A DNA stretch of 64,000 nucleotides from Pocillopora damicornis. Lineage: Eukaryota. Position 1 is the first letter of the stretch. Each line of letters begins with the position of its first letter. The DNA lies in assembly GCF_003704095.1 (NCBI RefSeq), contig NW_020846492.1, forward strand, positions 372,001-436,000, in the 5' to 3' direction. Of the stretch, positions 30,501 through 58,395 are shown in pieces. Below the pieces are notes generated by a model. The model was not told the DNA's origin. It searched no databases and saw only the letters and a program-made list of their open reading frames with translations. The position numbers and the translations under genes were made by a program.

Positions 30501-30888
30501 AGAAAGACCAGTAGAAGAAGACATTGTCATGACTCAGGTGAAAAAGGTTGAGGCCTCAGTTGACCTCATGAGCTGGGACGACTCCACCGATGGACCTACC
30601 TACGGTAGTGAGGGGGATCCAGCTCCAGTTGCCCAAACAGAGTTAACGAAGAGGGCTGACAGCACTGAAGGAGAACTGTTTTCCAGACCGTCGAAGCTGG
30701 TTGACATGGAAGCCCCTATCAATGTGGTTAAAAAAGGAGATGTTGAGACCGTGCCCAACTCTAAAAATCTTCTAGACCTTGAAGAGGTGAGTAACTTTCG
30801 GAGGTAACAGATCCATAAGGCATTAGAAAATATTTAATTTTTTCGCCCTATACCTGTTCAGGGTACCCTGTTATACTCTCCCACCGAA

Positions 30889-30924
<36 letters not shown>

Positions 30925-33900
30925 ATCCCTGTTCATCTCGAAATGTCAATGGTTTTATTCCTTTTAAAACTGTTGGGGAGAATGGGAAGGGGGTGGGTGG
31001 AGTCCAGAAAGTTAAAATGGATCCCACCAATCAAAGCTAATTGAATAGAAAAGATACAGGAAACATATATATACCAAAACATACAAGTAGAAAAAAAACA
31101 CATTTCTTTTGATGATAGGACATTATGAGGACAGCCTTTTAGCGAACTTTACCAATGCTGATCCAGCTTTCGCTGACGCACAACTTCGATTTAAAGTAAA
31201 AACCAAAGGGACGAAGGTGATAAACATTAGGGACTTTAAGGGATGAAAATTCGAACATTCCAATTTTAAGAAACCAGGAGAAAACCCTACTTAATGACTA
31301 CTAGCGGTACTGAGGGAATTAGGAACTTTGGCGGTGAGTTTGGTGCGGGACCGAGCTTGTTGTCACATTAACAACGGCTATTCTTAATTTACACTTTGCA
31401 TTTGGAGGGTTAAGTTTTGTCCAATAAAAGACAATTTCAATTAACGATGGTTAGTTTAAAACAATAACATAATTTGATGCTTGTTTAATCCCTCGGCTGG
31501 TATTATCTAATCTACATAACCATTAGGCGAATAAGTATCGTAACCGTAAATCGTTCAAATCTGTGGTGTTCACGACTCCTTATTGAAGTGTTTCTCATGT
31601 CGGTAATCTCTCTTAACCAGGCATCGGGTCTGTCATCAGCACCCATCGAGCCCATCTCGACATGGGACAACAGAGGTCGCACAAGCAATTCCGCCGAAGA
31701 AGACCGAAGACGTCGCGAGAGAGAATACGAAGAAAGGAAGCGAAGAATCGAGGAAAACCAACGGCGAGCGGCGAAAGAGCTCAAAGTGAAGAAACTCTAC
31801 GAAAACGACGTGAAGCCCTGGAGAGGAGAAGAGATCCACGAAGGAAAGCACGATGATGTATCCATAAAGGAAAAGAGGCGTTCGTTGGTGGATATGTGGG
31901 AGTCATTTTCTGAGCCCCACACCAATGTGATGTCTTTTGAAGAATACGAAGATGAAGAAATGCCTGAAGAGAGGAACAAAGTCGTGACTCTCGAGAAAAG
32001 AGCTGTGTCGGTGAGTACAAGTAAATTTTTTGATTGATGAACGTCACAAAGTTGAACTGAGGGGTAGAAAAATTGCAGCGGTTTGCAGAGAAACTTGTCT
32101 GAGGGATTAGGCCAATTTTGGATCTTAAACTTAGCTTAGATTTGCCTCAACTTGTTTAAAATAAACAAAGATTCAAGGAGGTAAGAATGCTACTAGTCGT
32201 CGATTATCTATCTATCAGTCTTCTCGATCATTATCAAACGGTTCGGAACACACAGTAATGTTGCGTTGATTAATGCAGTTGATTGTTACTGGAAACTTGT
32301 AGTGCGTTGATTATACGAGTCAAAGTAGAATAAAACACTAGACAGATCAACAGCTCATGAAAATACAACGTCGATAATTTTGTTCAAATTACACAGGTGG
32401 GATTTTGACAGCGAAAACTAAGGAAGGTCCATGTACTTATCAAAATTCGATTTCTCTCTTTACACAAAAGATTGACTCGCAGCAACAGAATTTGAATTTC
32501 ACACCTTGTATCAACCAAAGAGGCTGATGTGTTCCGACTATACAGGTGTTTTACAGAACAAAATGTTCGATAATCGAAACAACAAAAAAATCCAACTTTG
32601 TTGCCAATATTTCAAAGACAAAAAAATAATATCAATATATTTCTAGTGCTGACTGTGGGAGCTTTACAAAACGGTTTGTAATGATATCAGACCCGAATTC
32701 TGGTAGAAGTCCAGTTTTCCCCAGAGACTCCATCAGCGCTATTATTCATACAAATTATTATTCAAAGTTGGGAAAGGTTTACTTTTGATAGTACTTATAA
32801 TTTCGAGAATACTTAGCTACATATCGAACGTCACGTGAAAGGTAACGATAACGATCTGTTTATGTGTGGTATAAAAGTCTCTGTTCGAATTTTCCACCAA
32901 ATTGACCTAGATATAGTCTTTTTTTTAAGAATAAGGTTTACCATTACTGAGGTACGCTAAATCTGTTTGACCCGATCTTTTGTTTTTGTTTTGCCGAATG
33001 ACTACCAGGTATACTTTGAGTGATTTTTTCACATTCATACAAATACTCCCCAAGTTTATTTTCATTTGTTTGTAAGAAAATCTAAAAAAATAAACGAGAA
33101 ATAGTTATTTGATCTCATCTCTGACAGTTTCACGGTCTAAAGACTTCATTAGCAGTCTCTCTATTGTCTGTCAAGATAAATGACAAGTTTAGATGAATTA
33201 AGAGAGAGATTATGCAGTGCGTTAAGACAGGTTGAAATTTTAGCAGTGCTCGTCCCACGTATAACTGATCTCACCTTAGTTATTCCCACTTGGATTTCTT
33301 AAGTGCCCCTTGAGATATTTGCATAACACGCATGTCTGTACAGGTCCGTTTGATAAAAAATAGCAAGGTTTCTCAAGCTTGGGAGTAGCGGCGAGCTAAA
33401 TTATACCAGAGTTAACAGTTAAGATGGTTTCAATTTAATTTGGCGAGTAGTTTGATCCGTTGAAAGAGAAAGACGACGAAGGAGACATGGAGGTCGAAGT
33501 TATCACCACAACACGACCATCTGCGGACACGGACATCAACCCAAATTTGACTGCGGAGGAACAACGATGGGAGAGCGCTGGACAATTCCAGCCAGGCCGG
33601 CTACAAAAAACTGTGTTCCACAGCTTGTCTGAAGCGGCCTCTGTCGACGAAAAACCGACACCAAAGCCTCGTAAGAGTCGATACGACTGGATGAAGGGGG
33701 AGACAGAAGATGACCAAGCGGCGCTTGTGCCAACGAAGTTAAAAATTGACCGGCAGAGTAATCAACTTGAAGATGGAACATTCAGGTGAGAAAATTTTAA
33801 TAGTCTCTCTACCAATCTTTGGCAATTTTGCCGACCGTTGCACTGAAAATACAACCGACTGCAGTCGAAACAAGCAGACGAGCACGTATCTTAATCACGT

Positions 33901-36900
33901 TCAAGGACCGTTCCACTTGCCTGACCTCCATTGCAGTTAGATTATCAAAATTCCTGGATTTTTCTTTTAACGTTAAAGTAATGCATAAAACGCTATATTT
34001 TTTTTTACATTTGTACCGCAATATTCATGGCCAATACTCGAGGGAGAGCTCTCGCTTAATCCAAACGGCACGTAGTGTTGGTTAAAGGATTTAAAACCTG
34101 AATTCCTGAATCGACTTGTGGTTTTGAGTTTCACAGCTGCGTTAAAATCAATTATTGCTAAATTGTGTTTTTTGAATGACTTTTTCACCGACAAAGTAGA
34201 CTTGCGGTCGCATACGTTTGACTCTTGATTGTTTTAATGGCTGTGCGTGGGTCTAAAGGGCCTGAAAATACTGATGAAAAATTCCTGTCAAGTATTAACG
34301 AAATGTTATATTTGATATTCTTTGTAGAATTTTGTAAATGTTTTAAATATGTTGTTTGTGGTATGGATGACTAATTCAAACACATTGCTTTTATTTACAT
34401 GTTCACCTCATTCATCGTTATCATAAATACTGATTTAGTATTTTTAAGCAAACTACAGTGGTAATTATTTCAAGGAGATTTGTGACATGATGATGTGTAG
34501 TTTTGAATTAGCATTTAACTCGGTAGATCGTCACGCCACCTGTCACGCGGTATGTCACGCATTCTTTTTACTAAAATCAAAGACCAAATTCATGTTAACC
34601 TTTTAACTTCCACATTAAATTTGTAATTCTCCTTATTGTCAACCATGCAATTCTTATAATGTTGGTTCAGAGAATTGAGTATTGGACCAACTAATAATCT
34701 CCAGTTAATAGTTTTCTTTATTCTCATCACTTATCTGGTTGATATTGTATTGATATTGTAAGGAGAAATTCTGTCTTGGTCACTCACGGGAGTTAAAGGG
34801 TTAAATTAAAAGCAACTGGAGAATATAACAAGACTCTTGAAACAACTCATACTTTGCCTCTTCCGTCGAGATTGAAATTTCTTTTAAATAATTTTCTTTT
34901 CCAAATGTTTACAAACATTTCCTGTTATTTCCCTTTTTCAGCAACGGTCAAGACAGAACAAGTCCACCCGAGGTAGCTTGAATATTTGTTTAAGATTCTT
35001 TAAATGATACAATTTTATCTCATAAAGCAGTAGTATCGTTGTGTAACTGTTCCATTTCCTTAGCCTGTTTGAACCTTTCGGTAAAGTGCAGGAATAAGGA
35101 ACGTTTACGTACAAGTTAAGTAACGTATACTCTGGAATGGAATGGACTGGACTGGACTGGACTGAACCGTACTTAACCGTACTAATACCTCATTCACACT
35201 GGCAAAAAAGTGTTTAGTTAAACCGGATTTAACTGAATGAAAACAAGAAACAGAGAAACGAGGAACCGAATTTTCCATGGGATTCAAGTAGTCCCTTACT
35301 TGTATATTCAATGTGCTGCATTTGAAATCGACAAACATCGGTTCAAGTAGCTTCTATGAAGAAAAAAATCTCAATCGTATTACACAAAACGCCTTCAAAA
35401 AATGTTTAAGCTTTGGTGTGAATGGGGTATATGTTTAAATGAGACAATGAAATAAGGAAAGGCAATTAAAAGTCTATTTTGATTTTTTAGACCAAGAAGT
35501 TAGATTCTACGCGATATGTACCGTTTAAACAATTAGAAGCGACAACTTTGTCTTGTTTAGTATTAGTTTTTACATTTTATGTTAGAGCTTTGAATATCAA
35601 TTTCACTGCATTTCCCACAGTGAATCGAGACTAGAGAAGAGCAGGCTGACGGAAGACGCGCGAAAAAGGACTCACGTGAGAAACGAGACGCGCAGAGGAC
35701 AGGATGCGTGTAGCAAGACTGCTAAAATATCTCCTTCTGACATATAACGCAAGTCTGCTTCTCGTGAAAATACGCTCTAAAAATTTCCACTTTGTTTCAC
35801 TCCTTAGCCAGTCCCAAGGAAGGTCAAGACGGAAAGCCATGATTTAAAAAGCAGCAGCGAGAGCGAAAGCGAAAGCGAGAGTAATGGAGGAAGTGACAGC
35901 GAAAGTGATAATGAAGAAGAGAGGGTTCCTCGAGTGGATACCGTTGAAGTTCTCAACTCACAACTCACAGAGGAGGAGAAACAGTGGGAGCAAGCGGGAA
36001 ATTTCCAACCCAAAAAGCTAAATCTTTCTCTATTTGCTGGGTTTCAACAAGCACCTGCGAATGCAGCAGACAGACCGGCACCAAAGAAGACACAAGGAGC
36101 ATCCCAACCCTCGCAGTATAAAAAGCCACTTGTGAACAATGAAGAAGAGATTCCCGCTCCGGCTGAAGTGAAAGTTCAGGAAACTGAGCCAGAAATGGAG
36201 GACATCAGGTAAATTATTTAAGGTTTTGGGAACAACTCTTGGCGCAAAATCACTTCATTACATTTGCTTACCGTCACGTTTGGTTTGGTTATTTTCTGGT
36301 ACGAAGTAGTTTTACAAGGAATATCAGCGGACACTTGAACCCCTTAGAATGACTTGGATAAAGTTTCTCCTTACAACAGCACCCCCAAATAGCATATTAA
36401 GGCCACAAGAATATAGGAATGATCACCAACTAAATTCTCCTCATCAGCACCTTGGGAAATGTATACAGAAAAGCATAGAGAATATGCAAACTGATTTTAG
36501 GGTGTGAAGGGTTCACTTCAAACACGTGTTTCGTATTTCTCCTTTTCAACTGTGTTACGTTTTCTTGTTGATCAGTTAACCCTTTAACCTCCAAGATCTT
36601 ATTAGTAATTCTCCTTACTGTCTGCCATATAGTTCTTGTGATGTTAGTTTGGAGAATTTGTTATTGGATCGACTAATAATCCCCTAGTTAATGTTTTTCT
36701 TTATTCTCATCACTTTCTGCTTGATATTGTATTGATATTGTAGGGAGAAATTATATCTTGGTCACTCATGGGAGTTAAAGGGTTAAGGAAACTTGCTACC
36801 AACTTATGATTCCCCTTGTAGCTGTTGGGTGTCTTTGTGCTCATTTCCTACTTGCTAAATAATGTATTGATTTTTCAAGAAGACGTTGCATGTTAACCCC

Positions 36901-39900
36901 TCTACCCTAGAAAGTGTCTAGCACTTAATTTCTCTTTACAGTATCACTAATGAATTAAACATTAAGCAAGACTAACAGATGTGATCGCCAACTAAACTAT
37001 CTCACGATTGTTGGACAAATTGTCCTTGTCACTACCCAAAGAAATCCTTTACGTCACACTTGCAACTAATCCATGAAATCGGAAAGACATCGATTGCTGC
37101 ACTTTTCATCCCAGAAATGGAAATATTTTAGAGATATTTTCATGCAATCAATCCTTCACGCCGATCATCATCTGTTCAGAATTCAATTGTGTCTCATGAT
37201 GATGATATGATCTCTGAGTTTTAAATCTATCGACCATACTTCATTTAATTTTCAAATTTTTTTCAAAGAGAAAAACAGCTCATTCAATTTAAGATTTTTT
37301 TTTCTTTGCAGTCCGGTTCTTGAAGTAAAAACAGAGACAGAGGTAAGGTTTCAATGTTATCTTGTGATTATTTTTCTACACCTTAGAATTCAATCGCCTT
37401 AGGATGTTCTGCTGTAGGAAAACGAGTTGAAAGATTTTTTTAACGCACTGGTAAAGTTGGGGGCGAACTTGTTTCACTGCAGGGGGCGAACTCGCAAAGG
37501 GGGCGAACTGGTATCGAGAGACACTTTTTCACACAATATCCCAAACAGATCGAAGTTATTAGAGAGTGAGGATTCGAGAGGGTAATTTAACAGTAATGCA
37601 TTTAAACTCGTCATGAGAGTCTTGCTAATGCTGCAATCATTAACCTTTTGGCGAGATGTACTGGTGAAGGTGAATAGTATGTTTATGAGAGTAAAATATT
37701 AATTAATAAAAGCGCAAGATGCTGCATACAACACAACTATTAGCTTAAAATCTGCGCAACAGCACTGGCTAAATCACATTAATAAACAAATGCAAAACTG
37801 ACTACAAATTGTTCTTACTGCTTTTAACGCATTTAGGAAATATATTCTTTTGTTTTCTTCGTAATGGCAACGAATTACTTAGACGACTGCAACTAATAAA
37901 CGAGCTTTCTAACACACAGTTTACTGGTTTTGTTTTTAAATGTGAGCTTTTTGTTTATTTTAAACACCAGTCTGTTAAAAGTAACTTAAGCTTACGCATG
38001 CGCTGCTGCTGCTTATTGCGTTGTTGTATACCTGGCTTAATTTCTCTTGAGAAAGAAGACAACCATAGCTCTTGGAGAGGAGGGCATTGAGAGCTATCAC
38101 TTTGACTCCAAATACCGGACAAAATATCCAATAAAATTCAAATACCAAATCGAAATAACTCAACCCAAAGGTTCGAAGATTTTAATCTAACTTTATAGTT
38201 TGGACTATTTTAAAAACGATCAAAAAACCATTTAGATTTAAGAAAAAAAAAAAAACCACGGAAACCGCTGCGGATGTCAAAGCCACAAAAGAAGCCACTT
38301 TGAATAGAAAAGATCGAAAAACCGATTTCGAAAATTACCAATATTGAAAACAAAAAAACCAAATGCCCTCCTCTCAGTTCGATAGCTAAACCTCATTTAG
38401 CGGCTAAACTGTATTAATCACTTGTAGCCTCTCTCATCTTCGCTTTACACCTACACGTATGAGGAGGAAAGTGATGACGACGATGACGTTCCCGGTTGGA
38501 GAAAGGTAGAAGAGCAACGAAGACAACAAGAACGAGAGGAAATCGAAAGAGCGAAAGAAGAGGAAAAAAGACGACGGGAACAAGAGGCCATGGAAGAGGA
38601 GTCACAAAAGCAACCTGATTCAAGTGACGATGAGTTTGAAACCAAAGTACGCACAAAGGAAGTCAGAAAGATTAATCCAAATCTGTTGTTTCAGTTCATG
38701 AAAGAGGCAGACAAAGAACCAGAGAGACCCCTGAAATCGTCGAAACCCAAACAGCAACAAATAGATGTATCCAGTGTCTCGTTGTCAGAATCTACACCCG
38801 TTGTCGACAACCCCTCCGAAGACGGCTATGCAGGAGACCAAGAAAGAGAGGTGGAAGATGAGTACGAAGAGAAAGTACGGAGCGGACAAGTAAGAAAGTT
38901 GAAGCTAGTTAACAGTCCTTTTCTTCAATCGAAGGAAACGGAGATTGCTCCTGACTACCGTCGGGATGAGCCCCGTAGCTCTCGAATTATCAAAGACGAG
39001 ATCTACGTAGAGAAAGTTGAACACTCGACTGTCGAGTCTGCGCCAAGAAGAGACTGGGAAGAGGAGGCAGATGAGGTATTCAAGCATGCCGCTGTCCTTA
39101 GCGATCCACATGAACGCGATCATACGTGTTTTGTTAGTACCAAGTAATTGACAAATTTTTGACAAGCGACTTATCAACGCGAACCATACACTAAATTCGT
39201 AAGGCGGCCTTTAGATTACGTATTGCAATCGAAATCACACTGTTCTTTAGTTTAAAAAAATGTACACCTGTGGAGTGATCCGGCTTGCTAATAACAAACA
39301 CAAGACAGTGTAATATTGCTGTTCCGCAATTGCACCATTGAAAATAGTCACGTTTTGTTTGTTCGTTGTTTTCTGTTTCACACTAAAGACCAAACAGCGG
39401 CACCCATGTAACGCCCTATCACCTAACACCTACTGGTGGTTTATAATTTAAGTTCAAAATGCTATGGTCCTTCGTGGGAATTGTTTCAATGATGACGCAA
39501 CTCCCTTATCTGGTATCAATAAATTTAAGTATTGCTTGAAAAATCATTGCAACAGCTGTAAAGTAGACTAACATTAAACCACCGTGGTATGGACCACTAC
39601 TATGAAATATGAGTGCAAAAATATTCCGTACGGAATAGAAGTCGAGTTGGTGTCAGTGAACAAGTTTTGCACATTTTCTTAGACGTGATTCGTTGTTTTT
39701 TTTTTTTGTCATTAGCCTGAAGTCGACAACGTTGCTGGCGCAACTTTGGAGAGTTACGAAGAGGAAAGTGAAGATGATGGTGTTCCTGAATGGCGCAAAA
39801 TGGAAGAAAAACGAAGACAACAAGAGCTGGAGGAAATTGAAAGGGCCAGATTAGAAGAGCAAAGGAGACGAGAACGGGAAGCGCTTGAATCCAATGAACA

Positions 39901-42900
39901 GGAGGATGAAGATTCAATCGATGATGAATTCGAAGCAAAAGTTCGAACCAAGGAGATTCGAAGAATCAATCCTAATTTGCTTGTTCAGTTTATGAACGAG
40001 TCAAAAGAAGAACCCGCAAGTGATAGAAGACCCAAACAGGAAATCGTAAAAACTCAGCACGTGTTGGTGACGGAAACCACGTCCAAGGATGACAGCGATC
40101 ATGAAGATGCTCTGGAAAAAGATGACGAATTTGTCGAGGATGAATACGATCTCAAAGTGAAAAAAGGGCAAGTGAACAAGCTCGTCCTTGACAACAGTCC
40201 TTTCTTGCAAAAGCAAACCAGAAACGAGACACCTGTTTTGCAAACGAAATCAGAACCAAAGACTATTAAAGTACCTAAACAGGCCTTGCAGGATTCTTTT
40301 GTGCGGGAAGAAGAGCTTGTTCAAGTAATTGATGAGAAAGTTGTGGAGTGTCAACCTGACTTGGGTTTCCGTGAAGGAAACGAACACGATGAGTACGAGG
40401 TAAAAGTTAAATCCAAACTTGTTAAGAGGTTAAGTCATGACCAGTTCCATTTTCTCCGCAAGCAAGAAGAAGAGGAGCGTAAAAGGCTTCAAGAAGAGGA
40501 GCGACGTCGAATAGAACGCGAGGAACGCGAATTACTTAAAAAAGAGGAAGAGCGCAGAAGAAGGCTAGAGGCTGAAGCCCGTGCTAGAGAAGAAGAGAGG
40601 ATTCGCAAAGAAGAGGAAATCAGAAGGCAGGAAGAAGAAGCGAAAGCTCGTAAAGAGGAAGAAAACAGGCGTCGGCGTGAAGAGGCTGAACGAGTTAGAA
40701 AGGAGGAGGAAGAACGGTTACGAAGAGAAGAAGAAGAGGAGCAGATGCGCATGGAGGAAATGCGGAGGCAAAAGGAAGCAGCTAAAAAGAAATTTCAGAC
40801 CGGAATTTTTGATGATGTTCCTGTGACTCGTTCTGAGAAGGATATATACAGCGTGGGGCGTCTTGATGCGAATAAGTTCTTGCAATTCCAGCAAAGTCCT
40901 ACGGAAGAACCAAAACTGAAGTCAAAAGCGCGGTACGACCAGAAGGTAACAAAAGAACCCAAGGTACCAGAAGGTGTTGTAGAAACTGTTCAAGTGGCAT
41001 CTGTTGATTTGATTGAAAGCAGTCCTTATGAGGAAGATGGAGGATCTTTGCTATCCGAAGACGCAGAATACGAAGAAAAACGAAAGAGTGTGGGAAAACT
41101 GGACAAGGAGTGGTACATTTTACAGCAACGAAAGCAAGCGGAAGAAAATGAGCGGCGAGCCAAAGAATTAGAAGAGCAAAGGCTAAGAGAAGAACGTAAT
41201 GAAATATTCCGGTTTCAGGACGACGATTCCACTCCAGAAGTTGTTGGCACTTTGGAAAAAAGAAGAAGCAAGCTTAGCGCCGACAAGTTTAGTGTTTTTG
41301 AACAGGATGCTGTGGGAGGGAACAGTGGACCCGGAAAAACCCAAAAAGAAGGTTCAATTATGGTTAAAAAGAGGGAAGAAGTTCAATCTGCACCTGCAGA
41401 AATAAAAGAGTATGAAAGTAATGGAAAGATTAATAGAAAGAATTATGACGATGACAATGTTATCATTCTCGGAATGGATGATTCCGAAACAGTCCAACGG
41501 AAAATGCGTCTCCAGCGAGAAAGAGACGAAAAACAACTGCTTCGCCAAGAGGAGGAAAGGAGAAGATTGCTTGCCGAGGAAAGTTTGGACTACCGTGACA
41601 GTGAAACAGAGAGTGATAAACCCAAGAGTGTTGGAAAACTGAATTACCAACAATTCTCTGTGTTCCAGCAGGAAGGACCAGTCGCTCCGATAGCAAAACC
41701 GCGCAAGCAGGACCCGCAAGTGATCCAAGAAGTGGTCAGTGTCAAAAGTCAGGAGGTAGTTGAAAGCTCTCCAGTCGATATGAACGAAGCTTATGCCTGC
41801 CACGGGGGTCCTGCTGAGACGCAAGAAGATGTTGAGTATGAGAAAAAGATCAACGCAGGCCAGAGACTTGATGTGGAAAAGTTCTTGAATGCCAGGTCGC
41901 AGGAGTCAGTAGAGAGAACACAACGTGCTAAACGAATGGCAGAGGAGAGAATGCGTCAGGAGCAGGAAGAGCTGGCTAAGTTAAGATTAGAGGAACAAAG
42001 GCGGATGCAAGCGGAACTAGACGGGGGCTATGAGAAAGAAAGTGATCATATTCAGCCGCTGGAAACCGAAAGTAGGGAATCTATAACCGGCTCCGATTCT
42101 GAAAGGTCACGAAAAGTGTCCATTGAAAGAAAAACGTCGACACCCATGGAACATGAGCCAGAGAGTACAGAAAAAGGTGTTGGTGTTGGTGTTGGTCGTT
42201 TACCAGAGGAACTTCGTTTACAATTTGAGAGTGATAGCAAAAATACAAGTTCTCGACGACAGTCCACTAAAATCAAAGGCTCAAGATCACTGACAGACGA
42301 AGAATCGACAAGGACAAACTCGATTGAGAGTCTTCGCAGTATTTCTGGTGAAAGTATGTCTTCTGGGGCGCGAGAAAAAGACATGAATGGAACCGCTAGT
42401 ATCACTGAAAAATTGTCGTCCTTAGACAGGTAAGTACAATTTAATTTCAAACCTTGTAGTAATATACTGATTTTATTCTTAGTGCTCGACTCACGGTCCA
42501 TTAAGAGCTCATTTGGAAACTTCTGGCGTAACATACCTGTGTGAGATACCGATAAAAATCGCTTAGTTGAGTCGTAATCAGGTTTTTCCAATGCAGAATA
42601 CGCTTGAAACTTTCAGCTTTTACAGAAAATAGTAAACCAAAACTGCTATGATTTGGAGGACATGTTTACCTTCACGAACTACATTTATATACCACGAATG
42701 CTTTCTTTCAGGAGGGAGTCCAATCAGGAAGTTCAAGTGGAAGACAGAACAACAGAGGTGTGTTTTATAAACTTTTTCCACACATTATTTTTATACATTA
42801 CTTTTGGATCTGTCCTCTCGCCAAAAGAAGTAAACTATCTATGAATGAACAGACAACCTAGCTAATTTCCAACCAAGATGACCGGAACGAATGAAAGCTT

Positions 42901-43558
42901 TTTAATAGGATACATAGACGTTTACTTTGTGACATTTTCAAACACGTAAATAGAATATATCACATATTTCAAAAACCACACAGTAATCTTTTTTTAAGTA
43001 AAAAATTCAAAAAAAATTCCAGTCATCGGAACCGTTCCACTGCTATCAGTAGAAGACGTAGTAGAACGGCGCCCAAGCAAAACTACATTTTGTGAGCAAC
43101 TCATGGGCCAGTTCCAAAAGAAAACGAACAGATAAGCATTAGTTTCACGAGAAATAAGTTCAGATGTCGGATTTCGCAAGATTTCGCTACTTTTTGGATG
43201 ATTCATGTTTGCTTATGCCTGGATATAGTTTTGGCTTCGAGTTCCAGTGACACAGTTGTTGAACTATACACCTGCTATGATAAATAATCTTAAGGTTTCC
43301 TGGTTATAGTCGTACTCTCCAGAGGAAAAACCAATTCCTAAGAAACTCAACACAAGTATGTTTGCTGCCTTTGAGAAGAGCGACCGCGGACCAGTACAGC
43401 TTCGGCGTGCGAAGAGCGAGAAGCGTGCCAGACCCAAGAGCATTGGAAACGTGGACTTATTGATATGGCAAGATGACGCTAATCTTTCCCATCCTCCCAC
43501 CGACGTTTCAAGAGGGGGGTCTGGGCGCCAGCCACGACCAAAAAGCATTGCATTTTGA
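24517..43558 (+). CDS. Large (~2265 aa) Glu/Arg/Lys-rich protein: N-terminal plexus/GSE1-like C4 finger, ER/K helices, repeated GKL..F motifs
   Basis: Exons 24517-24823, 29141-30786, 31621-32010, 33451-33785, 34942-34972, 35808-36208, 37312-37342, 38428-39075, 39716-42429, 42712-42757, 43310-43558. All junctions are GT-AG and phase-compatible; total 6798 nt = 2266 codons including stop. The 39075 donor (GAG|gtattc) and the 33451 acceptor are weaker. Confidence 0.8.
28758..28802 (+). ncRNA. Minimal type I hammerhead-ribozyme-like motif in a second Penelope-type repeat
   Basis: tgact-CTGATGA-t-gacttccgctcagtttttc-GAAA-c-GTC-agtca. Stem I tgact/agtca, both core boxes and the GUC triplet are present; stem II is weak. 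Confidence 0.55.
30861..30927 (+). mobile_element. Short family B 3' fragment with 8-bp target-site duplication
   Basis: cctgttca at 30853-30860 and 30928-30935 flanks the shared tail. Confidence 0.7.
34595..34804. mobile_element. Family A MITE
   Basis: ttaaccttttaacttcc ... gggagttaaagggttaa. Confidence 0.85.
35134..35190. repeat. Pentamer microsatellite (ggaat/ggact) grading into aaccgtact
   Basis: ggaatggaatggactggactggactggactgaaccgtacttaaccgtact. Confidence 0.8.
35621..35747 (+). CDS. Candidate alternative terminal exon of the 24517-43558 gene
   Basis: Good acceptor (catttcccacag). Phase 2, matching the donor at 33785. Reads (S)ESRLEKSRLTEDARKRTHVRNETRRGQDACSKTAKISPSDI-stop. Confidence 0.4.
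36576..36786. mobile_element. Family A MITE; relatives at ~36340-36514 and ~36893-37030
   Basis: ttaaccctttaacctcc ... gggagttaaagggttaa. Further decayed copies at ~2409-2612, ~16855-16950, ~25980-26160 and ~44250-44428. Confidence 0.85.
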
Positions 43559-44556: not shown

Positions 44557-44686
44557 GAGGGCCCATGATTCTAAATGACCCACTGAGGGCCCCATACTTA
44601 AACGAACCCTTCTCATATCACCCGCTAAGAGCCCCATACTTAAGCGAACCTTTTTAGTATCACCCGCAAAGGGTCCACTACTTAGC
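44557..44686. repeat. Short degenerate tandem repeat, ~43-bp unit
   Basis: gccccatacttaaRcgaacc...tatcacccgc twice, plus partial units on either side. Confidence 0.7.
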
Positions 44687-47559: not shown

Positions 47560-47720
47560 TACAAAAATTCTAGAGACTCCGAACTTAGTTAACTCAGTCG
47601 GTTGTCCAACATGTATTTGCTTCTTCACGCTTGGGGAACTCAGGCACTCCATCGAATTCAATCGTGTCTCTAGATTGTTCCACACACGAATGCCTAATGT
47701 ATATTGCAAAATTGTCGAGG
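47560..47720 (-). mobile_element. Possible decayed LINE (CR1/L2-like) ORF2 C-terminal remnant
   Basis: YTLGIRVWNNLETRLNSMECLSSPSVKKQI resembles the G.++WN.L....+....SL..FK..L tail of these elements; short and degenerate. Confidence 0.35.
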
Positions 47721-48947
47721 ATATGTGGCAGGGTGAGAAGGAATATCTATCATCAATTTCAAGCACCTTTTAACGTTATTGTCTTACGGAACTTTCCAGC
47801 AAAACAAACCCCAACCTTTCTTTGTCTATTAAAAAACGTAAGAGTTTACACTGATGAAACAAATAATACGACTGTCTAATTTAAATACAATACACAGTTA
47901 ATTGAAAATAAAATATTTTCGGCTCTTGGAAACGCCACAGATTAGAGAATCGGCTTAACGTTTTTGTGTACGTTTCAGTATTTTTGATTGAGCATGCTTG
48001 AGTTGAACAGTTTGCTTGTGTCAACTCAACTAAACAAAAACATAAAGGTAAATCCATTGTCGGCAATCTCGTTCTTTCGTAAGGAGTCGAGAAAAATCAA
48101 ATAACTGCAAACTGTTTTTTTTTCGGCGTTTGAGACAATAAAACTGTTAGAGTAAAGGCTAATGAGAATCGATATTTCGATAAAAATAATCCTAGGGAAC
48201 GAAGTCTCGGACCAAAATCCAATATACCGATCATTAAGACTTTGGTATTCCTGAACCTTTTCAGAAGACAAGTAGATATATCAAGGGAGTTGCTTGGAAC
48301 TTAAGAATAAGACTTGTGGCAAACGGTAATCGACACATGAAAAATTCTTTCATCCGCTTTTTTTGTACCAAGTTTACTACCTTGAAAGTATTAGAATTAA
48401 TAATATATGTTGTTTCCGATGTTTTTTTTTTTTTTTTTTTTGGGGGGGGGGGGGGGGTTTAATTTATGTTTCAGGGGAAAAAAAACAAAAAAGGAAATCG
48501 CAGGGGTTTTTGCCGTATTCCGTTACTGTGAATGTCATTATTAATAACGCTTATCTTAAAATCGCCAGTTTATGCTAAAAGTTGAGTTGTATCAGGTTGT
48601 GACGCACGATATCTTACGCATCACCTAAAATAGTAAGTTAAGGTGAACAATCGCTCGTTAAACACGTACTACTGGGCGTAACGCCGAAGAAACACTTTTC
48701 TTATTATGGATAACACTAAATAGAAGCAGAGGCAATAAATGCTACCTTATCCACCGTAAAGAGTTCCAACAGCTGACGTTTTGAGCGTTAGCCCTTTGTG
48801 GGAGCGAATGATTTAGTTTTACCAAAGAAAACTTGATGAGTGGTCATAAGCTTTGGTCACAACTTTCTTACACTTTTCCCTCATGGTTTTTCTACCTCAC
48901 ATTGCCTCAGTTCTAGGGACCTTTAACAAGATGGCTAGGGAATACTA

Positions 48948-49403
48948 CAGTCAAACCTGTATTAAGTTGTCACCCGAGAGGAATGGCGGATGACCGCTTA
49001 ATACAGGTGGACTACTTAATGCAGCTTGACCGGCAAATGACTTGTCTGATGTTCGTGCGTAATATTTTTCCAAACAGTCCAAAGAAGAAAGATAATATAC
49101 AGTGCGTTGACGACAGTTGAACTGAAAGTTACTAACATTGATTCCGGGAGATAAACATGGAATAAATTTGACTTAAGAGAATTCTTAATGTTATATGAGA
49201 GGTTCGGCTTTAAGTGATCATTCAATACAGGTGGAAGACAATACAAACAGGTCGTTACGACTCAGTCAAGGGTGACCACGAACACTCAATAAAGGTGACT
49301 GCTAAATAGAGGTGAAAAATACCGGCGTTAAGTGGAACAAAATTACGGGACTTTGACAACCGACCGCTTAATACATGGTGACCGCTTAATACAGATTCGA
49401 CTG
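48948..49403. mobile_element. Tc1/mariner-pogo-type MITE with TA duplication
   Basis: TA|CAGTCAAACCTGTATTAAG ... CTTAATACAGATTCGACTG|TA, with internal repeats of gaccgcttaataca. Confidence 0.8.
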
Positions 49404-49717
49404 TAGTATGTCACAATTGTTTCCGTATCAATTAAAAATATAATTAACCTATTGGCCCGGCAGGCTAGAAACCACTATATATCAATTGATTTAAGTATTC
49501 ATAGAACAAACTCAGATCAGATCAAACAAGAATTAATTCCTCTAAATCCCCGCACGAGATTTCGCAACGTCCTCTGGGAAATAATCCCACACTCAATCGC
49601 TATATTCTTCACTTTTTACGCAGCACAACAACGAAAATATCTCCGAATTCATCCCATGACGCCGCTTGGTTAGATAACACGAAGGAAACTCTTCCTTCCA
49701 CTTCAAATTGAGAAAAA

Positions 49718-52700
49718 ATGTCACAAATTATCACGAGAAAGGTGTTCACGTGTTCCAGCGCTTCGACACAGCACCCGATCGAAATAACAGGCGAGGAGGG
49801 CACCATCCTAAAACCAGAAACGTTTCCTTCGAGTTACGAAGCAGCAGTTGCAGAAAGTCCACACAGTGAAATAGACCAAGGAGGTGGAATTGCCTTCAAA
49901 ATTCGTGGGAGTAAAGATGCTAATCCAGCATATACAAAACAAAGTTCAACAAAGATCGTTCGGACATTTGTTACGAATGAAGAAGAGAAGAAACAGCTCG
50001 CCAACGAGGCAGCACTGAATATTAAAACAACAGTAAATTCTAATACTGAACAAAGTCTTGCGATATTACAAGAAAATATTCAAACAACGAATAGACACTC
50101 AACCACTGCAGCCAACGAAGACCCTGGAAAACATACCAACGTGGACTCTACTAATATAACAGCTACCAGCAGACGAAGGTCAAAAACGAGTTACACATAC
50201 AGAGTTCATGATGGCATAGCAGTGTTGGAAAATGTAACAAGATACCAGCCTGAAACGCAAACAATCACAAACTTTGCGCGCCAAAATCCAAAACATACAG
50301 AGATATCCAATGTATCCTTTGAAATAAATACAGAAGACCTGGCAACAAACCAAGACCATGACGTTCAAAAACAAAACACCTTCAGAACAAATCTGGCCTT
50401 TCAATCCAAGCCCAAGACGATATTTACGCAAATGGATATGGTCTCTAAATCAGAAAATAGAGCCGTAAGAGAAATATCTGGTAATCGTCATACTGAGGGC
50501 ATTGGCCAACCATCAACAGACGCAGAAAAAAGGAGACAACTAAAATTAACCACCCGAACTACGGCATACCATGCCACAGCACAAAATTCATCCCAAGGAG
50601 AAAGGCAACTTATTGACACCCCCCAAGACACCCAGAAATCACCAACATACTCTTACTCAGTCACAAGCCCAGGCCCTTCTCACAAGATTTTTGGATCAGA
50701 GGTGTACGGAGTAAAATCAATAACACAACCGCAGCACCAAAAAGAGCGTCTCCCATCAACCAATACAAAACAAATAACGACACAGCACCAAACAACAAAT
50801 ATATCTGACTCTGGAAAACTTATAATTCCCAATTTTACTCAATACACTTCAACCAATCAGGTAAAACTATGTGAGCCAACACCAAAGGACAACAATGTCA
50901 AAAGTGACGAAAAAGTAAAAGACCCCAACACTGAGGAGTGGGAAACACAGGTAGTTACTCAGAAAGATGTCCGTTCAGAAAAATCGCTGCCAACAAATAA
51001 GCTCTCAGCATATAAAATGCAACTTCTTCACAACCAAGATACACAGCCCAAGAAAAACCTCGACAAATCCAGCCCTGGAAGACTTGTCATTCCCGACTTT
51101 AATCAAAGTACTTTCACAGCAGAAGTCAAAGAGACCAAGCCATCGCCCAAAGTCGACAAACTCAAAACTGAAGAGTGGAGAACACAGGTAGTTACCTACG
51201 AAGAATTCAGATCAGAACCAACTCTCCAGGCAAACAGGCTCTCAGAAGATAAAATGAAATTTCTTCACAACCAAAATACACAGCCCGAGAAATACCTCGA
51301 CAAATCCAGCCCTGGCAGACTTGTCATTCCCGACTTTAATCAAAGCTCTTTCACCACAGAAGTCAAAGACATAAAGCCATTGCCCAAAGTCGACAAACTC
51401 AAAACTGAAAGGTGGGCAACACAGGTAGTTACTCAGGAAGATGTCAGATCAGAACAACCTCCACAGGCAAATAGACTGTCAGCAGATAAAATGAAATTTC
51501 TTCACAACCAAGATACACAGCCCGAGAAAAACCTCGACAAATCCAGCCCTAGCAGACTTCTCATTCCCGACTTTAATCAAAGCACCTTCACTACAGAGGT
51601 CAAGGAGACTAAGCCATCGCCCAAAGTCGACAAACTCAAAACTGAAGAGTGGGTAACACAGGTAGTTACTCAAGAAGAGATCAGACCAGAACCACCCCTC
51701 CAGGCAAACAGACTGTCAGCAGATAAAATGCAATTTCTTTACAACCAAGATACACAGCCTGAGAAAAACCTCGACAAATCCAGCCCTGGAAGACTTGTCA
51801 TTCCCGACTTTAAACAAAGTACTGTCACCACAGAGGTCAAAGACACTAAACCATCGCCCAAAGTCGAAAAACTCAAAGCCGAAGAGTGGGTAACACAGGT
51901 ACTTACTGAGAAAGAGGTCAGATCAGAGCCACCTCTGCAGGCAAAAAGGCTGTCAGCAAATAAAATGCAATTTCTTCACAACCGAGATACAGAGCCCGAG
52001 AAAATTCTCGACAAATCTGGTCCTGGCAGACTTGTCATTCCCGACTTTAAACAAAGTACTTTCACCACAGAGGTCAAGGAGACTGAGCCATCGCCTAAAG
52101 TCAACAAATTTAAAATTGAAAAGTGGGTAACACAGGTAATTACTCAGGAAGAAGTCAGATCAGAGCCACCTCTCCAGGCAAACAGGCTGTTAGCAGATAA
52201 AATAGAATTTCTTCACAATCAAGATACACAGCCTGAGAAAAAGCTCGACAAATCCAGTCCTGGAAGACTTGTCATTCCCGACTTTAATCAAAGCACCTTT
52301 ACCTCAGAAGTCAAAGAGACTAAGCCATCACCCAACGTCGACAAATTCAAAACTGAGGAGTGGCTAACACAGGTAGTAACTCAGGAAGAGGTCAGATCAG
52401 AACCACCTCTACAGGCAAACAGGCTGTCAGCAGATAAAACGCAATTTCTTCACAATCAAGAAACACAGCCCGAGAAAAAGCTCGACAAATCCAGTCCTGG
52501 AAGACTTGTCATTCCCGACTTTAATCAAAGTACTTCTACCACAGACGTCAAAGAGACTAAGCCATCGCCCAAGGTCGACAAACTCAAAACTGAAGAGTGG
52601 GTATCACAGGTACTTATTCAAGAGGAGATCAGATCAGAACCACCTCTCCAAGCAAACAGGCTGTCGGCAGATAAAATGCAATTTCTTCACAACCAAGCTA

Positions 52701-55700
52701 CACAGCCCGAGAAAATGCTCGACAAATCTAGTCCTGGCAGACTTGTCATTCCCAACTTTAATCAAAGTACTTTCACCGCACAGGTCAAAGAGACTAAGCC
52801 ATCACCCAAAGTCGACAAACTCAAAACTGAAGAGTGGCTAACACAGGTAGTGACTCAGGAAGAAGTCAGATCGGAACCACCTCTCCAAGCAAACAAGCTA
52901 TCAGCGGATAAAATAGAATTTCTTCACAACCAAGATACACAGCCCGAGAAAAAGATCGACAAATCCAGTCCTGGTAGACTTGTTATCCCCGAATTTAGCC
53001 AAAGCACTTTCACCACAGAGGGCATAGAGACTAAGCCATCACCCAAAGTCACCAAACTCAAAACTGAAGAGTGGGTAACACAGGTAGTTACTCAGGAAGA
53101 AGTCAGNNNNNNNNNNNNNNNNNNNNNNNNNNNNNNNNNNNNNNNNNNNNNNNNNNNNNNNNNNNNNNNNNNNNNNNNNNNNNNNNNNNNNNNNNNNNNN
53201 NNNNNNNNNNNNNNNNNNNNNNNNNNNNNNNNNNNNNNNNNNNNNNNNNNNNNNNNNNNNNNNNNNNNNNNNNNNNNNNNNNNNNNNNNNNNNNNNNNNN
53301 NNNNNNNNNNNNNNNNNNNNNNNNNNNNNNNNNNNNNNNNNNNNNNNNNNNNNNNNNNNNNNNNNNNNNNNNNNNNNNNNNNNNNNNNNNNNNNNNNNNN
53401 NNNNNNNNNNNNNNNNNNNNNNNNNNNNNNNNNNNNNNNNNNNNNNNNNNNNNNNNNNNNNNNNNNNNNNNNNNNNNNNNNNNNNNNNNNNNNNNNNNNN
53501 NNNNNNNNNNNNNNNNNNNNNNNNNNNNNNNNNNNNNNNNNNNNNNNNNNNNNNNNNNNNNNNNNNNNNNNNNNNNNNNNNNNNNNNNNNNNNNNNNNNN
53601 NNNNNNNNNNNNNNNNNNNNNNNNNNNNNNNNNNNNNNNNNNNNNNNNNNNNNNNNNNNNNNNAGTCGACAAACTCAAAACTGAAGAGTGGCTAACACAG
53701 GTAGTAACTCAGGAAGAAGTCAGATCAGAACCACCTCTGCAGGCAAACAGGCTGTCAGAAGATAAAAAGCAATTTCTTCTTAACCAAGATACACAGCCCG
53801 AGAAATCATTCGAGACATCTAGCCCTGGAAGACTTGTTATTCCCGACTTTCGTCAAAGCACTTTCACTACAGAGGTCAAAGAGACTACGTTATCGCCCAA
53901 AGTCGACAAACTCAAAAGTGAAGAGTGGGTAACACAAGTGGTTACTCAGGAAAAAGTCAGATCAGAGCCACCTCTCCAAGCAAACAGGCTGTCAGCAGAT
54001 AAAATAGAATTTCTTCACAACCAAGATACACAGCCCGAGAAAACGTTCGAAAAATCTAGCCCTGGTAGACTTGTCATTCCCGAATTTAACCAAAGCACTT
54101 TCTCCAGAGAGACCAATGAGACTAAGCCATCACCCAAAGTCAACAAACTCAAAACTGAAGAGTGGGTAACACAGGTAGTTACTCAGGAAGAAGTCAGATC
54201 AGAACCACCCCTTCTGGCAAACAGGCTGTCCGGAGATAAAATGCAATTTCTTCACAACCAAGATACGCACCCCGAGAAAACGTTCGACAAATCGACCCCT
54301 GGGAAACTTGTCATTCCCGACTTTAATCAAAGCACTTTCACCTCAGAGGTCAAGGAGACTAAGCCATCGTCCAAAGTCGACAAACTCAAAGCTGAAGAGT
54401 GGGTAACTCAAATACTTACTCAAGAGGAGATCAGATCAGAGCCACCACTTCACGCAAACAGGCTCTCAGCAGATAAAATGCAATTTCTGCGCAAAGATGA
54501 TACACAGCCTGACAAAACATTCGAGAAATCTAGCCCTGGAAGACTTGTTATTCCTGACTTTAGTCAAAGCACTTTCACCACAGAGGTCAAAGAGACTAAC
54601 TTATCGCCCAAAGTCGACAAAATCAAAACTGAAGAGTGGGTAACACAAGTGGCTACTCAGGAAAAAGTCAGATCAGAGCCACCTCTCCAAGCAAACAGGC
54701 TACCAGCAGATAAAATGCAATTTCTTCACAACCACGATACACAGACCGAGAAAAAGCTCGACAAATCCAGTCCTGGTAGACTTGTTATTCCCGAATTTAG
54801 CCAAAGCACTTTCACCACAGAGGGCAAAGAGACTAAGACATTGCCCAAAGTCAACAAACTCAAAACTGAAGAGTGGGTAACACAGGTAGTTACTCAGGAA
54901 GAAGTCAGATCAGAACCCCCCCTTCTGGCAAACAGGCTGTCCGGAGATCAAATGCAATTTCTTCACAACCAAGATACACAAGCCGAGAAAAAGTTCAAGA
55001 AATCCAGCCCTGGCAGACTTATCATTCCCGACTTTAATCAAAGCACTTCCACCACAGAAGCCAAAGACACTAAGCNNNNNNNNNNNNNNNNNNNNNNNNN
55101 NNNNNNNNNNNNNNNNNNNNNNNNNNNNNNNNNNNNNNNNNNNNNNNNNNNNNNNNNNNNNNNNNNNNNNNNNNNACCACCTCTGCAGTCCAACAAGCTG
55201 TCAGCAGATAAAATGCAATTTCTTCACAATCAAGATACACAGCCCGAGAAAAAGCTCGATAAATCTAGTCCTGGCAGACTTGTCATTCCCGACTTTAATC
55301 AAAATACTTTCACTGCACAGGTCAAAGAGACTGAGCCATCGCCCAAAGTCGACAAACTCAAAGCCGAAGAGTGGGTAACTCAGGTATTTCCTCAAGAAGA
55401 GATCAGATCAGAGCCACCATTCCACGCAAACAGGCTCTCAGCAGATAAAATGCAATTTCTTCACAAAGATGATACACAGCCTGACAAAATGTTCGAGAAA
55501 TCTAGCCCTGGAAGACTTGTTATTCCTGACTTTAGTCAAAGCACTTTCACCACAGAGATCAAAGAGACTAAGTTATCGCCAAAAGTCGACAAAATCAAAA
55601 GTGAAGAGTGGGTAACACAAGTGGTTACTCAGGATAAAGTCAGATCAGAGGCACCTCTCCAAGCAAACAGGCTAGCAGCAGATAAAATAGAATTTCTTCA

Positions 55701-58395
55701 CAACCAAGATACACAGCCCAAGAAAATGCTGGATAAATTTAGTCCTGGCAGACTTGTCATTCCCGACTTAAATCAAAGCACTTTCACCGCACAGGTCAAT
55801 GAGACTGAGCCATCGCCCAAACTCAAAACTGAAGAGTGGCTAACACAGGTAGTAAGTCAGGAAGAGGTCAGATCAGAACCACCCCTACAGGCAAACAGGC
55901 TGTCAGCAGATAAAATGCAATTTATTCACAACCAAGATACACAGCCCAAGAAAAAGCTCGACAAATCTAGTCCTGGCAGACTTGTTATTCCCGACTTTAA
56001 TCAAAGCACTTTCACCGCACAGGTCAAAGAGACTGAGCCATCGCCTAAAGTCAACAAACTCAAAGCTGAAGAGTGGGTAACTCAGTTAGTTACTAAGGAA
56101 GAGGTCAGATCAGAACCACCCCTTCTGGCAAACAGGCTGTCTGGAGATAAAGTGCAATTTCTTCACAACCAAGATATACAAGCCGAGAAAAAGTTCAAGA
56201 AATCTAGCCCTGGAAGACTTGTCATTCCCGACTTTAATCAAAGCACTTCCACCACAGAAGCCCAACACACTAAGCCATCGCTCAAAGTCGACGACATAAA
56301 AAGTGAAGACTGGGTAACAGAGGTTCTTATTCAGGAAGAAGTCAGATCAGAATCACCTCTGCAGGCAAACAAGCTGTCAGCAGATAAAATGCAATTTCTT
56401 CACAACCAAGATGCACAGCCCGAGAAAAATCTCGAAAAATCCAGCCCTGGGAAACTTGTCATTCCCGACTTTAACCAAAGCACTTTCACTACAGAAGTCA
56501 AAGACAATAAGACATCTCTCAAAGTCCAGAAACTCAAAACTGAAGAGTGGGTAACACAGGTTGTTACCCAGGAAGAAGTCAGATTAGAACCACCTCTCCA
56601 AGCAAACAGGCTCTCAGCAGATAAAATGCAATTCCTTCAATATCAAGATACACAGCCCAAGAATAAGCTTGTCAAATCCAGCCCTCGAAGAGTTATCATT
56701 CCCGACTTTAATCAAAGTACTTTCATCTCAGAGATCAAAGACACTAAGCCATCGCCCGAAGTCGACCTTCTCAAAACTGAAGAGTGGGTAACACAGGTAG
56801 TTACTCAGGAAGAGGTCAGATCAGAACCACCTCCCCAGGCAAACAGGCTGTCAGGAGATAAAATGCAATTTCTTCAAAACCAAGATGCACAGCCCGAGAA
56901 AAAACTCGAAAAATCCAGCCCTGGCAGACTTGTCATTCCCGACTTTAACCAAAGCACTTTCACTACAGAAGTCAAAGACAATAAGACATCGCCCAAAGTC
57001 AAGAAATTCAAAACTGAAGAGTGGGTAACACAGGTTGTTACTCAGGAAGAAGTCAGATCAGAACTACCTCTCCAGGCAAACAGGCTGTCAGCAGATAAAA
57101 CTCAGTTTCTTAACAACCAAGATACGCATCGCGATAAAAAGCTCGACAAATCCAGCCCTGGCAGACTTGTCATTCCCACCTTTAATCAAAGCACTTTCAC
57201 CACAGAGGTCAAAGAGACTAAGCCATCGTCCAAAGTCGACAAACTCAAAACTGAAGAGTGGGTAACACAGGTAGTTACTCAGGAAGAAGTCATATCAGAA
57301 CCACCACTTCAGGCAAACAGGCTGTCAGCAGATAAAATGCAATTTCTTCACAACCAAGATACACAGCCCGAGAAAAAGCTCGACAAATCCAGCCCTGGCA
57401 GACTTGTCATTCCTGACTTTAATCAATGCACTTTCACCACAGAAGTCAAAGACATCAAGCCATCGAAAAATTACTTCATAAAGGATATACATTCTACTAA
57501 CGGTGGGAATGCCTTGTCATCTGAGATGGTTAGGCATATGAAGAGCCCTAAAAATGTCATTGAATTACAAAGTCGTGAATTACCACTTACCCAAAAGAGA
57601 GAGTTAACGGATGAATGGAAAGTGGAGGATAAAGGAAACGAAGATTGGCGATCACAAGCACCACAACCTTTAAAGGAGTCATTGGAAAAACTTAGATCAC
57701 TTTCTAGAACCCAGGAAATGCATTCAATGACAGGATCTGATGTGTTACCGAAAAATTCAAATGTGCCTCTGAGGGGTACTGACAACACCTTCTTCATTCA
57801 GATTCAAGATGCAGCCTTCACAACTGGAAATTACAAAGATGAGCAGGCGATAAGGCATTATCTGACTGAATTACCTGCGGGAAAAACAGGGTTTGTTCGA
57901 TCAAGGGAAACAAACCAAGTTTTAAAGTCAGATAGAGCTCATTCCTCCGACAGCGTTGTAATTCCCGTTGAACCGAAACAAGTTTCTTCTTCTTCTGGAG
58001 TCGTCATACATAACAGTGAGAACTGGATAACTCGCGCAAATACAAGTATATCGCCTGCAGAGAAAGAAAAGATTTTTTTCCATGCCGGTGAGGCACGTCA
58101 GGCTGTAAAATTAGGAGGGGTCTCATCTAGTGGCAGCGCAGTCATTCCCATTGAAATAAAGGACATTTCTTCGTCACCAAAAGTCCAGATACATGATGGA
58201 AAGACGTGGACTACTCGGCAGACCTCAGTTAAGTTGTCAAGAGATGACAGATCCTTTGTAAGTACTGGCGAAACTAAAGAAGTCATAACGTTGGATGGCT
58301 CTTCATCCAGTGGTGTTGTGATTCCAGTGCAAATTTCAAGCGAATCTTTGACTACAAACGTCAAGATATATAGCGGCCAAGTCTACACACCCTGA
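49718..58395 (+). CDS. Giant single-coding-exon tandem-repeat protein (roughly 2900 aa; exact length unknown because of gaps)
   Basis: The two long ORFs of the track are one reading frame broken by the N gap 53107-53663. About 370 aa of T/Q/S-rich N-terminus, >=26 units of 79 aa, then a unique region with three ~60-aa repeats; TGA ends at 58395. Splice acceptor ttcttcactttttacgcag ends at 49623. Confidence 0.85.
50930..57466 (+). repeat. Coding tandem array, 237-bp (79-aa) unit
   Basis: Trp codons recur every 237 nt: 50939, 51176, 51413 ... 53072; 53689 ... 54874; 55372, 55609, then 55837 (9-nt deletion) ... 57259. Consensus TEEWVTQVVTQEEVRSEPPLQANRLSADKMQFLHNQDTQPEKKLDKSSPGRLVIPDFNQSTFTTEVKETKPSPKVDKLK. 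Confidence 0.98.
53107..53663. other. Assembly gap; others at 13794-13999, 18810-18909 and 55076-55175
   Basis: Runs of N. Confidence 1.

Follow-up and report, generated by a model that had tools for sequence, protein, structure and literature searches.

Two adjacent single-copy genes of the coral Pocillopora damicornis that may encode mostly disordered, multivalent linear-motif proteins

The window analysed here, a 64,000-nucleotide (nt) stretch of Pocillopora damicornis DNA (contig NW_020846492.1, positions 372,001 to 436,000), is eukaryotic with a G+C content of ~38% and carries on its plus strand two neighbouring genes, called gene 1 and gene 2 below. Gene 1 is a multi-exon series of plus-strand open frames ending in a stop at 43558, and gene 2 follows it with a single coding exon that contains a tandem repeat array. 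An earlier note on this DNA had proposed that one short motif is repeated in both proteins, that both bind the same polymeric partner, plausibly F-actin, and that the repeat gene arose by local duplication and amplification of the motif. Our own reading, which we hold to be an even call, is that these two adjacent, single-copy, lineage-restricted genes encode mostly disordered proteins carrying a linear motif in many copies.

The exons of gene 1, which were searched singly, are listed here with the copies of the motif that they contain.

24517-24837, plus strand: candidate first coding exon of gene 1 (its link to the gene is a candidate only); the limits are those of the open reading frame (ORF), not splice sites; contains CxxC...CxxC
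29056-30804, plus strand: candidate gene 1 exon (again linked as a candidate only); open frame with an E/K/R-rich start, then S/E/K-rich
31489-32034, plus strand: gene 1 exon, limits taken from the open frame; an orthologous transcript matches 31858-32013 (tblastn, transcript-derived protein P0122)
33451-33786, plus strand: gene 1 exon with motif copy 1 (nt 33592-33633, PGRLQKTVF...); paralogue of exon 35808-36209
35808-36209, plus strand: gene 1 exon with motif copy 2 (nt 36009-36050, PKKLNLSLFAGFQQ); open frame, matched by P0122
38428-39144, plus strand: gene 1 exon with motif copies 3 and 4 (nt 38662-38703 and 38890-38931); profile match at E=7.7e-51
39716-42430, plus strand: big gene 1 exon, ~900 amino acids (aa), containing nine motif copies set apart by single helices rich in E/K/R and by disordered linkers
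Starts at nt 39956, 40172, 40421, 40853, 41090, 41264, 41630, 41858 and 42191, plus strand: motif copies 5-13 of the big exon, 42 nt each
43310-43558, plus strand: last coding exon of gene 1, with stop codon and C-terminal ...RPKSIAF; motif copy 14 (nt 43337-43378, PKKLNTSMFAAFEK)

The pieces from 31858 to 43555 are joined in that order by P0122, which derives from a transcript of another coral and has the same C-terminal end as the gene 1 last exon. In addition, the big exon is spliced to the last exon in the orthologues P0007 and P0014, both of which end in ...RPKSIA(F/Y). The open frames at 24517-24837 and 29056-30804 gave no Pfam match, and the latter contains 0 motif copies; the former encodes TICTFCNN ... 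VVCVACFHH, a small zinc-ribbon-like pattern that may belong to gene 1 exon 1 or to a separate gene. Exon 38428-39144 duplicates, within the gene, the opening ~240 residues of exon 39716-42430. The exon-level duplicate pairs inside gene 1 (38428-39144 versus 39716-40465, and 33451-33786 versus 35808-36209) are alike well beyond the motif, for example in LT(A/E)EE(Q/K)(R/Q)WE(S/Q)AG(Q/N)FQP.

Gene 1 contains 14 dispersed copies of V-(G/K/R)-(K/R)-L-x7-F-(Q/E). All 13 motif strings listed in the earlier note were present on the plus strand where it had placed them, and a further copy, GQRLDVEKFLNAR at nt 41858, was added. The stricter pattern [VPI][GKRN][KR][LI]x4[FLYM]xx[FL] matched 8 times in the 2,344 residues of the gene 1 open frames, compared with a mean of 0.016 in composition shuffles and never more than one match in 2,000 shuffles. 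This strict pattern was picked after the data had been seen; independent support for the motif is taken from the conservation of its cores, which were 78% identical across 13 orthologues compared with 48% for other non-helical residues (P=1e-19). Furthermore, the motif positions were invariant or nearly so when 14 orthologous big-exon proteins, with identity down to 46%, were aligned. The full element extends beyond the motif first described, consisting of (D/E)-E-(Y/F)-E-x-K-(V/I)-K-x-K-x followed by V-G-(K/R)-L-(D/N/S)-x3-Φ-x2-F-(Q/E), and it was found in 5-19 copies per protein in every family member, sea anemones included. Sequence comparison thus supports the motif of gene 1 as real and under constraint, and we consider it very probably functional.

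Charged residues (D, E, K and R) make up 45% of the big exon, which AlphaFold2 (AF2) predicts to be disordered apart from long isolated E/K/R helices at residues 231-352, 454-492, 580-617 and 710-759, with a predicted local distance difference test score (pLDDT) of 80-90; these helices qualify as predicted E/R/K single alpha-helix (SAH) segments. Short helices are predicted to flank the V-G-K-L of the motifs, the downstream helix starting at motif position 5/6, and AF2 confidence in these short helices is modest.

Gene 2 has the following parts.

46899-47238, plus strand: non-coding 5' exon of gene 2, start approximate (RNA-seq contigs from 4 runs in 2 studies)
47239-49621, plus strand: GT..AG intron in the gene 2 5' untranslated region (5'UTR); joint 47238->49622 in X1, X2, X3 and X5
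49718-58395, plus strand: gene 2 coding sequence, one exon broken by two N gaps; ATG at 49718, stop codon at 58393-58395
50912-57471, plus strand: tandem array of 79-aa (237-nt) units, ~26 of them visible, with blocks EEW(V/I)TQ (block 1), (N/K)(R/K)LSxDKxQFLxxQ (block 2) and SPG(R/K)LVIPDFNQ (block 3)
53107-53663, no strand: assembly gap 1, 557 N, within the gene 2 array
55076-55175, no strand: assembly gap 2, 100 N, within the gene 2 array
57472-58392, plus strand: gene 2 C-terminal region; weak matches to the unit hidden Markov model and a few short predicted strands of low confidence

The ATG at 49718 has an in-frame stop two codons upstream of it, and the unique N-terminal region is covered by PolyA RNA-seq contigs from two studies. 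Given the spliced 5'UTR and the in-frame stop ahead of the ATG, gene 2 is a gene of its own, expressed and coded by one exon; its start and end match the Stylophora LOC111324008 model (P0058). At its nominal length gap 1 shifts the frame (the pieces are read in the frames from 49718 and 53665) and does not fit the phase of the units, and gap 2 holds the frame and likewise does not fit the phase (26 aa + n×79 expected, 34 codons written). Because the nominal lengths misfit unit phase or frame, the gap sizes are placeholders. Further units lie hidden in the two N gaps. From the shared repeat and strand on either side and from the orthologues, we infer that gene 2 continues as one ORF across both gaps.

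The visible array holds 25 NRLS-type and 26 PGRL-type sites, so that the 50 or more copies claimed for gene 2 in the earlier note are reached when both sub-motifs are counted and by neither alone. Three blocks of the unit, E(E/Q)W(I/V)T, (N/K)(R/K)LSxDKxQFLxxQ and SPG(R/K)LVIPDFNQ, are conserved across coral species. Among units within the array pS, the synonymous difference, was 0.27, and pN/pS, the ratio of nonsynonymous to synonymous difference, was 0.44 overall and 0.26-0.28 in blocks 1 and 3; the units are old and individually constrained. AF2 predicted gene 2 to be fully disordered (pLDDT 32). At the C-terminus of gene 2 (57900-58392, plus strand) three degenerate repeats, each of the form S-rich-VVIPVE ... 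W-x-T-R, echo blocks 3 and 1 of the unit without block 2.

Because HMMER local scoring of a 14-mer was uninformative, the motifs of the two genes were compared with ungapped matrices. A reverse matrix was made solely from gene 2 block 2 (NRLSADKMQFLxxQ) in 14 coral proteins, with gene 1 not used. Its three best positions in gene 1 scored 21.2, 18.7 and 11.0 bits, and all three are known motif copies, matched in register; the top score on shuffles was 7.4±2.4 (P<0.001), and 1 of 83,623 control positions reached 11 bits. As evidence from sequence, this is decisive for the sharing of block 2 between the genes, and a common origin of block 2 in both seems somewhat more probable to us than separate ones. 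By hhalign, one gene 2 unit aligned to gene 1 residues 142-241, a stretch bounded by copies 6 (nt 40172) and 7 (nt 40421), with a score of 30 (P=0.0036), compared with 13.3±2.4 for column shuffles, 1 of 200 of which reached 30; this test leans on block 2 at both ends and is therefore not independent of the matrix test. Non-scleractinian relatives of gene 1 scored 6-10 bits on the block 2 matrix, which fits an origin of the unit from a stony-coral version of gene 1.

The 234-Mb genome assembly contains each gene once and no further relatives of either. In Acropora digitifera the gene 2 orthologue is immediately preceded, on the same strand, by the big and last exons of gene 1, and on another coral contig an ORF of 3,556 aa lies 6.9 kb downstream of a gene 1 exon. 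Acropora and the Stylophora-like lineages stand on opposite sides of the deepest split among stony corals. The gene pair, adjacent and on one strand in two coral lineages that diverged so early, is thus ancient. No gene 2-like unit was found within 10 kb of one sea anemone locus, and no gene 2 within 8.6 kb of the P0040 locus.

Members of the gene 1 family turned up in stony corals and sea anemones only. Gene 2 homologues were found only in stony corals, namely Stylophora, Desmophyllum, Acropora and Montipora, the last auto-named 'titin homolog', and among named protein matches to the window Stylophora was the closest. A profile search of 1.84 billion representatives returned 18 clusters at E<1e-10; all those examined belonged to the same motif-repeat family, the sole named cluster was from a sea anemone, and the remaining matches were to the E/K/R helix only. 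The C-terminal third of the Montipora 'titin homolog' (P0064) contains a second unit type of ~55 residues, KRNSLKLVFEADGRE with INKLSAERLQF, which indicates that a block 2-type motif was re-used with a different companion block in the Montipora lineage.

Since both genes are single copy, their adjacency is conserved and one sub-motif is related, the gene 2 unit could plausibly have originated locally from a module of gene 1. The local duplication proposed in the earlier note keeps that standing through linkage, block 2 and the hhalign score. The unit may have arisen from the gene 1 segment between copies 6 and 7, duplicated locally in a stony-coral ancestor, and would then have been amplified in tandem.

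In the reading that we favour, gene 1 would display 14 copies of an element of ~26 residues strung between long E/K/R-rich single helices, each element being a short acidic/basic helix (D/E-E-Y/F-E-x-K-V-K), a V-G-K/R-L break and a second short amphipathic helix with D/N/S as its N-cap, carrying the conserved F and F-Q/E. Gene 2 would display at least 26 tandem units of 79 residues in which the gene 1 element takes the form (N/K)(R/K)LSxDKxQFLxxQ. Through many weak identical contacts both proteins may decorate or cross-link one repeating intracellular partner, although whether the two in fact have the same partner is, in our estimate, evenly balanced. The likeliest class of partner would be a cytoskeletal filament, with F-actin as the leading single candidate, if a rather unlikely one taken by itself. 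A more speculative extension starts from the helix N-cap position, where gene 2 block 2 has R/K-L-S and copies in the gene 1 family mostly have D or N. Phosphorylation of the 26-45 gene 2 copies, which have R/K-x-S of basophilic-kinase type, might mimic an acidic N-cap and turn on dozens of binding sites for the same filament partner at once. That gene 2 is in this way a stony-coral innovation acting as a switchable competitor or extender of gene 1 is highly improbable at present.

A number of results count against a shared cytoskeletal role, beginning with the searches for known families. Pfam scans of all exon pieces and 17 relatives gave no true match for either gene and hence no cytoskeletal family; WH2, caldesmon, calponin and nebulin profiles were absent from every scan of exon pieces and family members. 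The Atlas gave no leads for gene 2 and no links to cytoskeletal families for either gene, and a PDB profile search with the 14-copy alignment returned only FEN1 at E ~0.9, a chance match. Several other candidates were rejected: the Gsf2 and DUF7083 Pfam scores on gene 2 were summed repeat noise with no passing stretch, and the weak Atlas leads for gene 1, Tankyrase_bdg_C (PF15327) and DUF4592 (PF15262) at 0.76-0.79, had no Pfam match in the exon pieces, P0007 or P0014. A literature search on the locus identifiers returned nothing.

Among known actin-binding motifs, the nearest in form is the SFM, VxxLxxxFE, a short helical F-actin-binding motif described in a 2026 paper (PMC13364712) and defined by V/I/L at P1, L/I/V/M at P4, F/W/Y at P8 and E/D/Q at P9, in a disordered context with one helix holding P1-P9. 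The coral motif resembles it as a short V..L...aromatic-acid/amide motif in disordered regions that is likewise predicted helical, and gene 1 copy 9, VGKLDKEWY (nt 41090), is close to the listed ABRA site VGNLKGRWQ (PMC13364712). However, the canonical SFM pattern was matched nowhere in gene 1, in the gene 2 unit or in the unique ends of gene 2; the coral aromatic and Q/E stand at positions 12-13 and not 8-9, the aromatic thus falling 8 residues after L and not 4, one helical turn further; and in AF2 the coral V-G-K-L lies outside the helix, which runs from position 5/6. The SFM paper reported no motif-positive cnidarian orthologues of its proteins and took an interface predicted TM-score (ipTM) >= 0.6 as supporting an actin complex (PMC13364712). 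Complex prediction for actin P0189 with gene 1 residues 431-481 gave 0.10 against a mark of 0.34, in a single job with no alignment and with a predictor other than that of the SFM paper, a score that speaks neither for nor against actin binding. P0189 is an invertebrate-type actin and primate entries were not used; P0137, an intron read-through ORF, was for that reason not accepted as an actin. Elsewhere in gene 1, the segment at 31858-32013 (plus strand), kept in the P0122 transcript, encodes KEKRRSLVDMWESF, of which the L-x3-W-E part is like the caldesmon SFM site VRNIKSMWE (PMC13364712), with R at SFM P1, where a hydrophobic residue is needed.

The earlier note had named PGKL..F segments in nexilin, and as far as the segment is concerned this holds: nexilin, an F-actin-binding Z-disc protein, contains SPGKLKLTFEE and SLSPGKLKLTFEELERQRQ (PMC9306924), its PGKL...F segments being followed, as in the corals, by E/R/K-rich helices. 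Kinship with nexilin was not borne out. The nexilin segment scored 2.3 bits on the family matrix (P=0.06 versus random, 0.2 versus its own shuffles), its F comes one residue earlier, the coral proteins have no Ig or other Pfam domain, and no nexilin-like relative appeared in the search of 1.84 billion representatives. Gene 1 resembles caldesmon and further E/R/K single-alpha-helix scaffolds in its long predicted isolated E/K/R helices between short putative binding segments, but the coral proteins had no Caldesmon Pfam match and no detected homology to caldesmon. Gene 2, with its dozens of near-identical short units each under purifying selection, recalls the nebulin-type rulers, from which it differs in that its 79-aa unit is predicted to be disordered and not helical and has no SDxxYK motif or Pfam match.

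The kinship of the two coral genes is itself contested by part of the evidence. Scored with the gene 1 matrix, the consensus unit of gene 2 reached a marginal 8.4 bits (P=0.07) and PGRLVIPDF 1.0 bit; block 3 (PGRLVIPDF) and block 1 (EEWVTQ) were at chance level in gene 1 (P=0.23 and 0.47, respectively), the EVRSEPP segment of gene 2 had no significant counterpart in the VVESxP blocks of gene 1 (P=0.32), and blastn found no similarity between the genes at the DNA level. The claim that both gene 2 sub-motifs are the gene 1 motif is thus kept for the NRLS block and given up for PGRLVIPDF. With one 14-residue block in common and no more, the likeness of the genes might be convergent or fortuitous, and gene 2 an unrelated coral-specific repeat protein that merely adjoins gene 1; this we regard as distinctly unlikely, since the three in-register matches at 11-21 bits occur against a background of 1 in 83,623 control positions at or above 11 bits, the adjacency has been kept across the deepest stony-coral split, and neither gene has another relative in the genome. 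Alternatively, the motif may be shared and its partner be the microtubule lattice, the E/K/R helices serving as spacers. The K-L-D-Φ-S/N-x-Φ core is like KKLDLS/EKLDF of tau/MAP repeats, sea-anemone and distant family members often have KKIDLSQFSQF, NKLDLNQFSQF or GKLDFNKITKSF, and tau residues 275-291 are VQIINKKLDLSNVQSKC (PMC3893535), which includes KKLDLS; like tau, MAP2 and MAP4, the coral proteins are disordered multivalent arrays. Tau scored 3.3 bits on a matrix from anemones only (P=0.011 versus random background), but P was 0.065 against its own shuffles and the score was negative on the coral matrix, a missing tau match that also speaks against our own reading. Neither the window exons nor the family members matched the Pfam tubulin-binding repeat PF00418 at E up to 1, the coral family lacks the KxGS/PGGG part of the tau repeat, and the motif spacing is 70-130 residues compared with 31. 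A microtubule partner is on these grounds very unlikely.

The element might instead be structural and not a docking site, its helix/V-G-K-L turn/helix forming a hairpin for self-association or condensates with no external polymer. In most copies AF2 has V-G-K-L flanked by two helices, both element helices have conserved hydrophobics (F/Y and V/I upstream, F and F downstream), and the remainder of both proteins is disordered, with high multivalency. However, the short helices are predicted with modest confidence, AF2 reported no packed hairpin, and gene 2 does without the upstream EYExKxK helix, yet its downstream block is still under constraint. We therefore judge a structural role of this kind unlikely and retain as our preferred reading multivalent motif proteins that may dock on a common repeating partner.

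Elsewhere in the window, the open frames upstream of gene 1 at 13756-15225 and 16336-16680 (plus strand; N gap at 13794-13999) look by eye like a NOC4/CBF-type nucleolar complex protein. In Acropora the gene 2 orthologue is closely followed, on the opposite strand, by a gene with TPR_NOC4 and CBF Pfam matches (L016 19973-22778). With a NOC4-type gene near the pair in both, the neighbourhood appears conserved but rearranged. Between the two genes, 44569-44684 is a 42-nt tandem repeat of 2.5 copies, and scattered intergenic pieces are covered at low depth by RNA contigs in some runs.

If the motif binds a filament, it would represent a cnidarian-specific class of linear motif, distinct from the SFM recently defined in vertebrates and displayed by two linked genes at valencies of 14 and at least 26, and it would offer a handle on lineage-specific cytoskeletal organisation in coral cell biology. 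The proposed origin of the gene 2 unit, if true, would clearly illustrate how a giant repeat gene can grow out of a module of its neighbour. Should the partner prove to be something else, the pair would still be a clean, testable case of conserved motif islands in fast-evolving disordered proteins.

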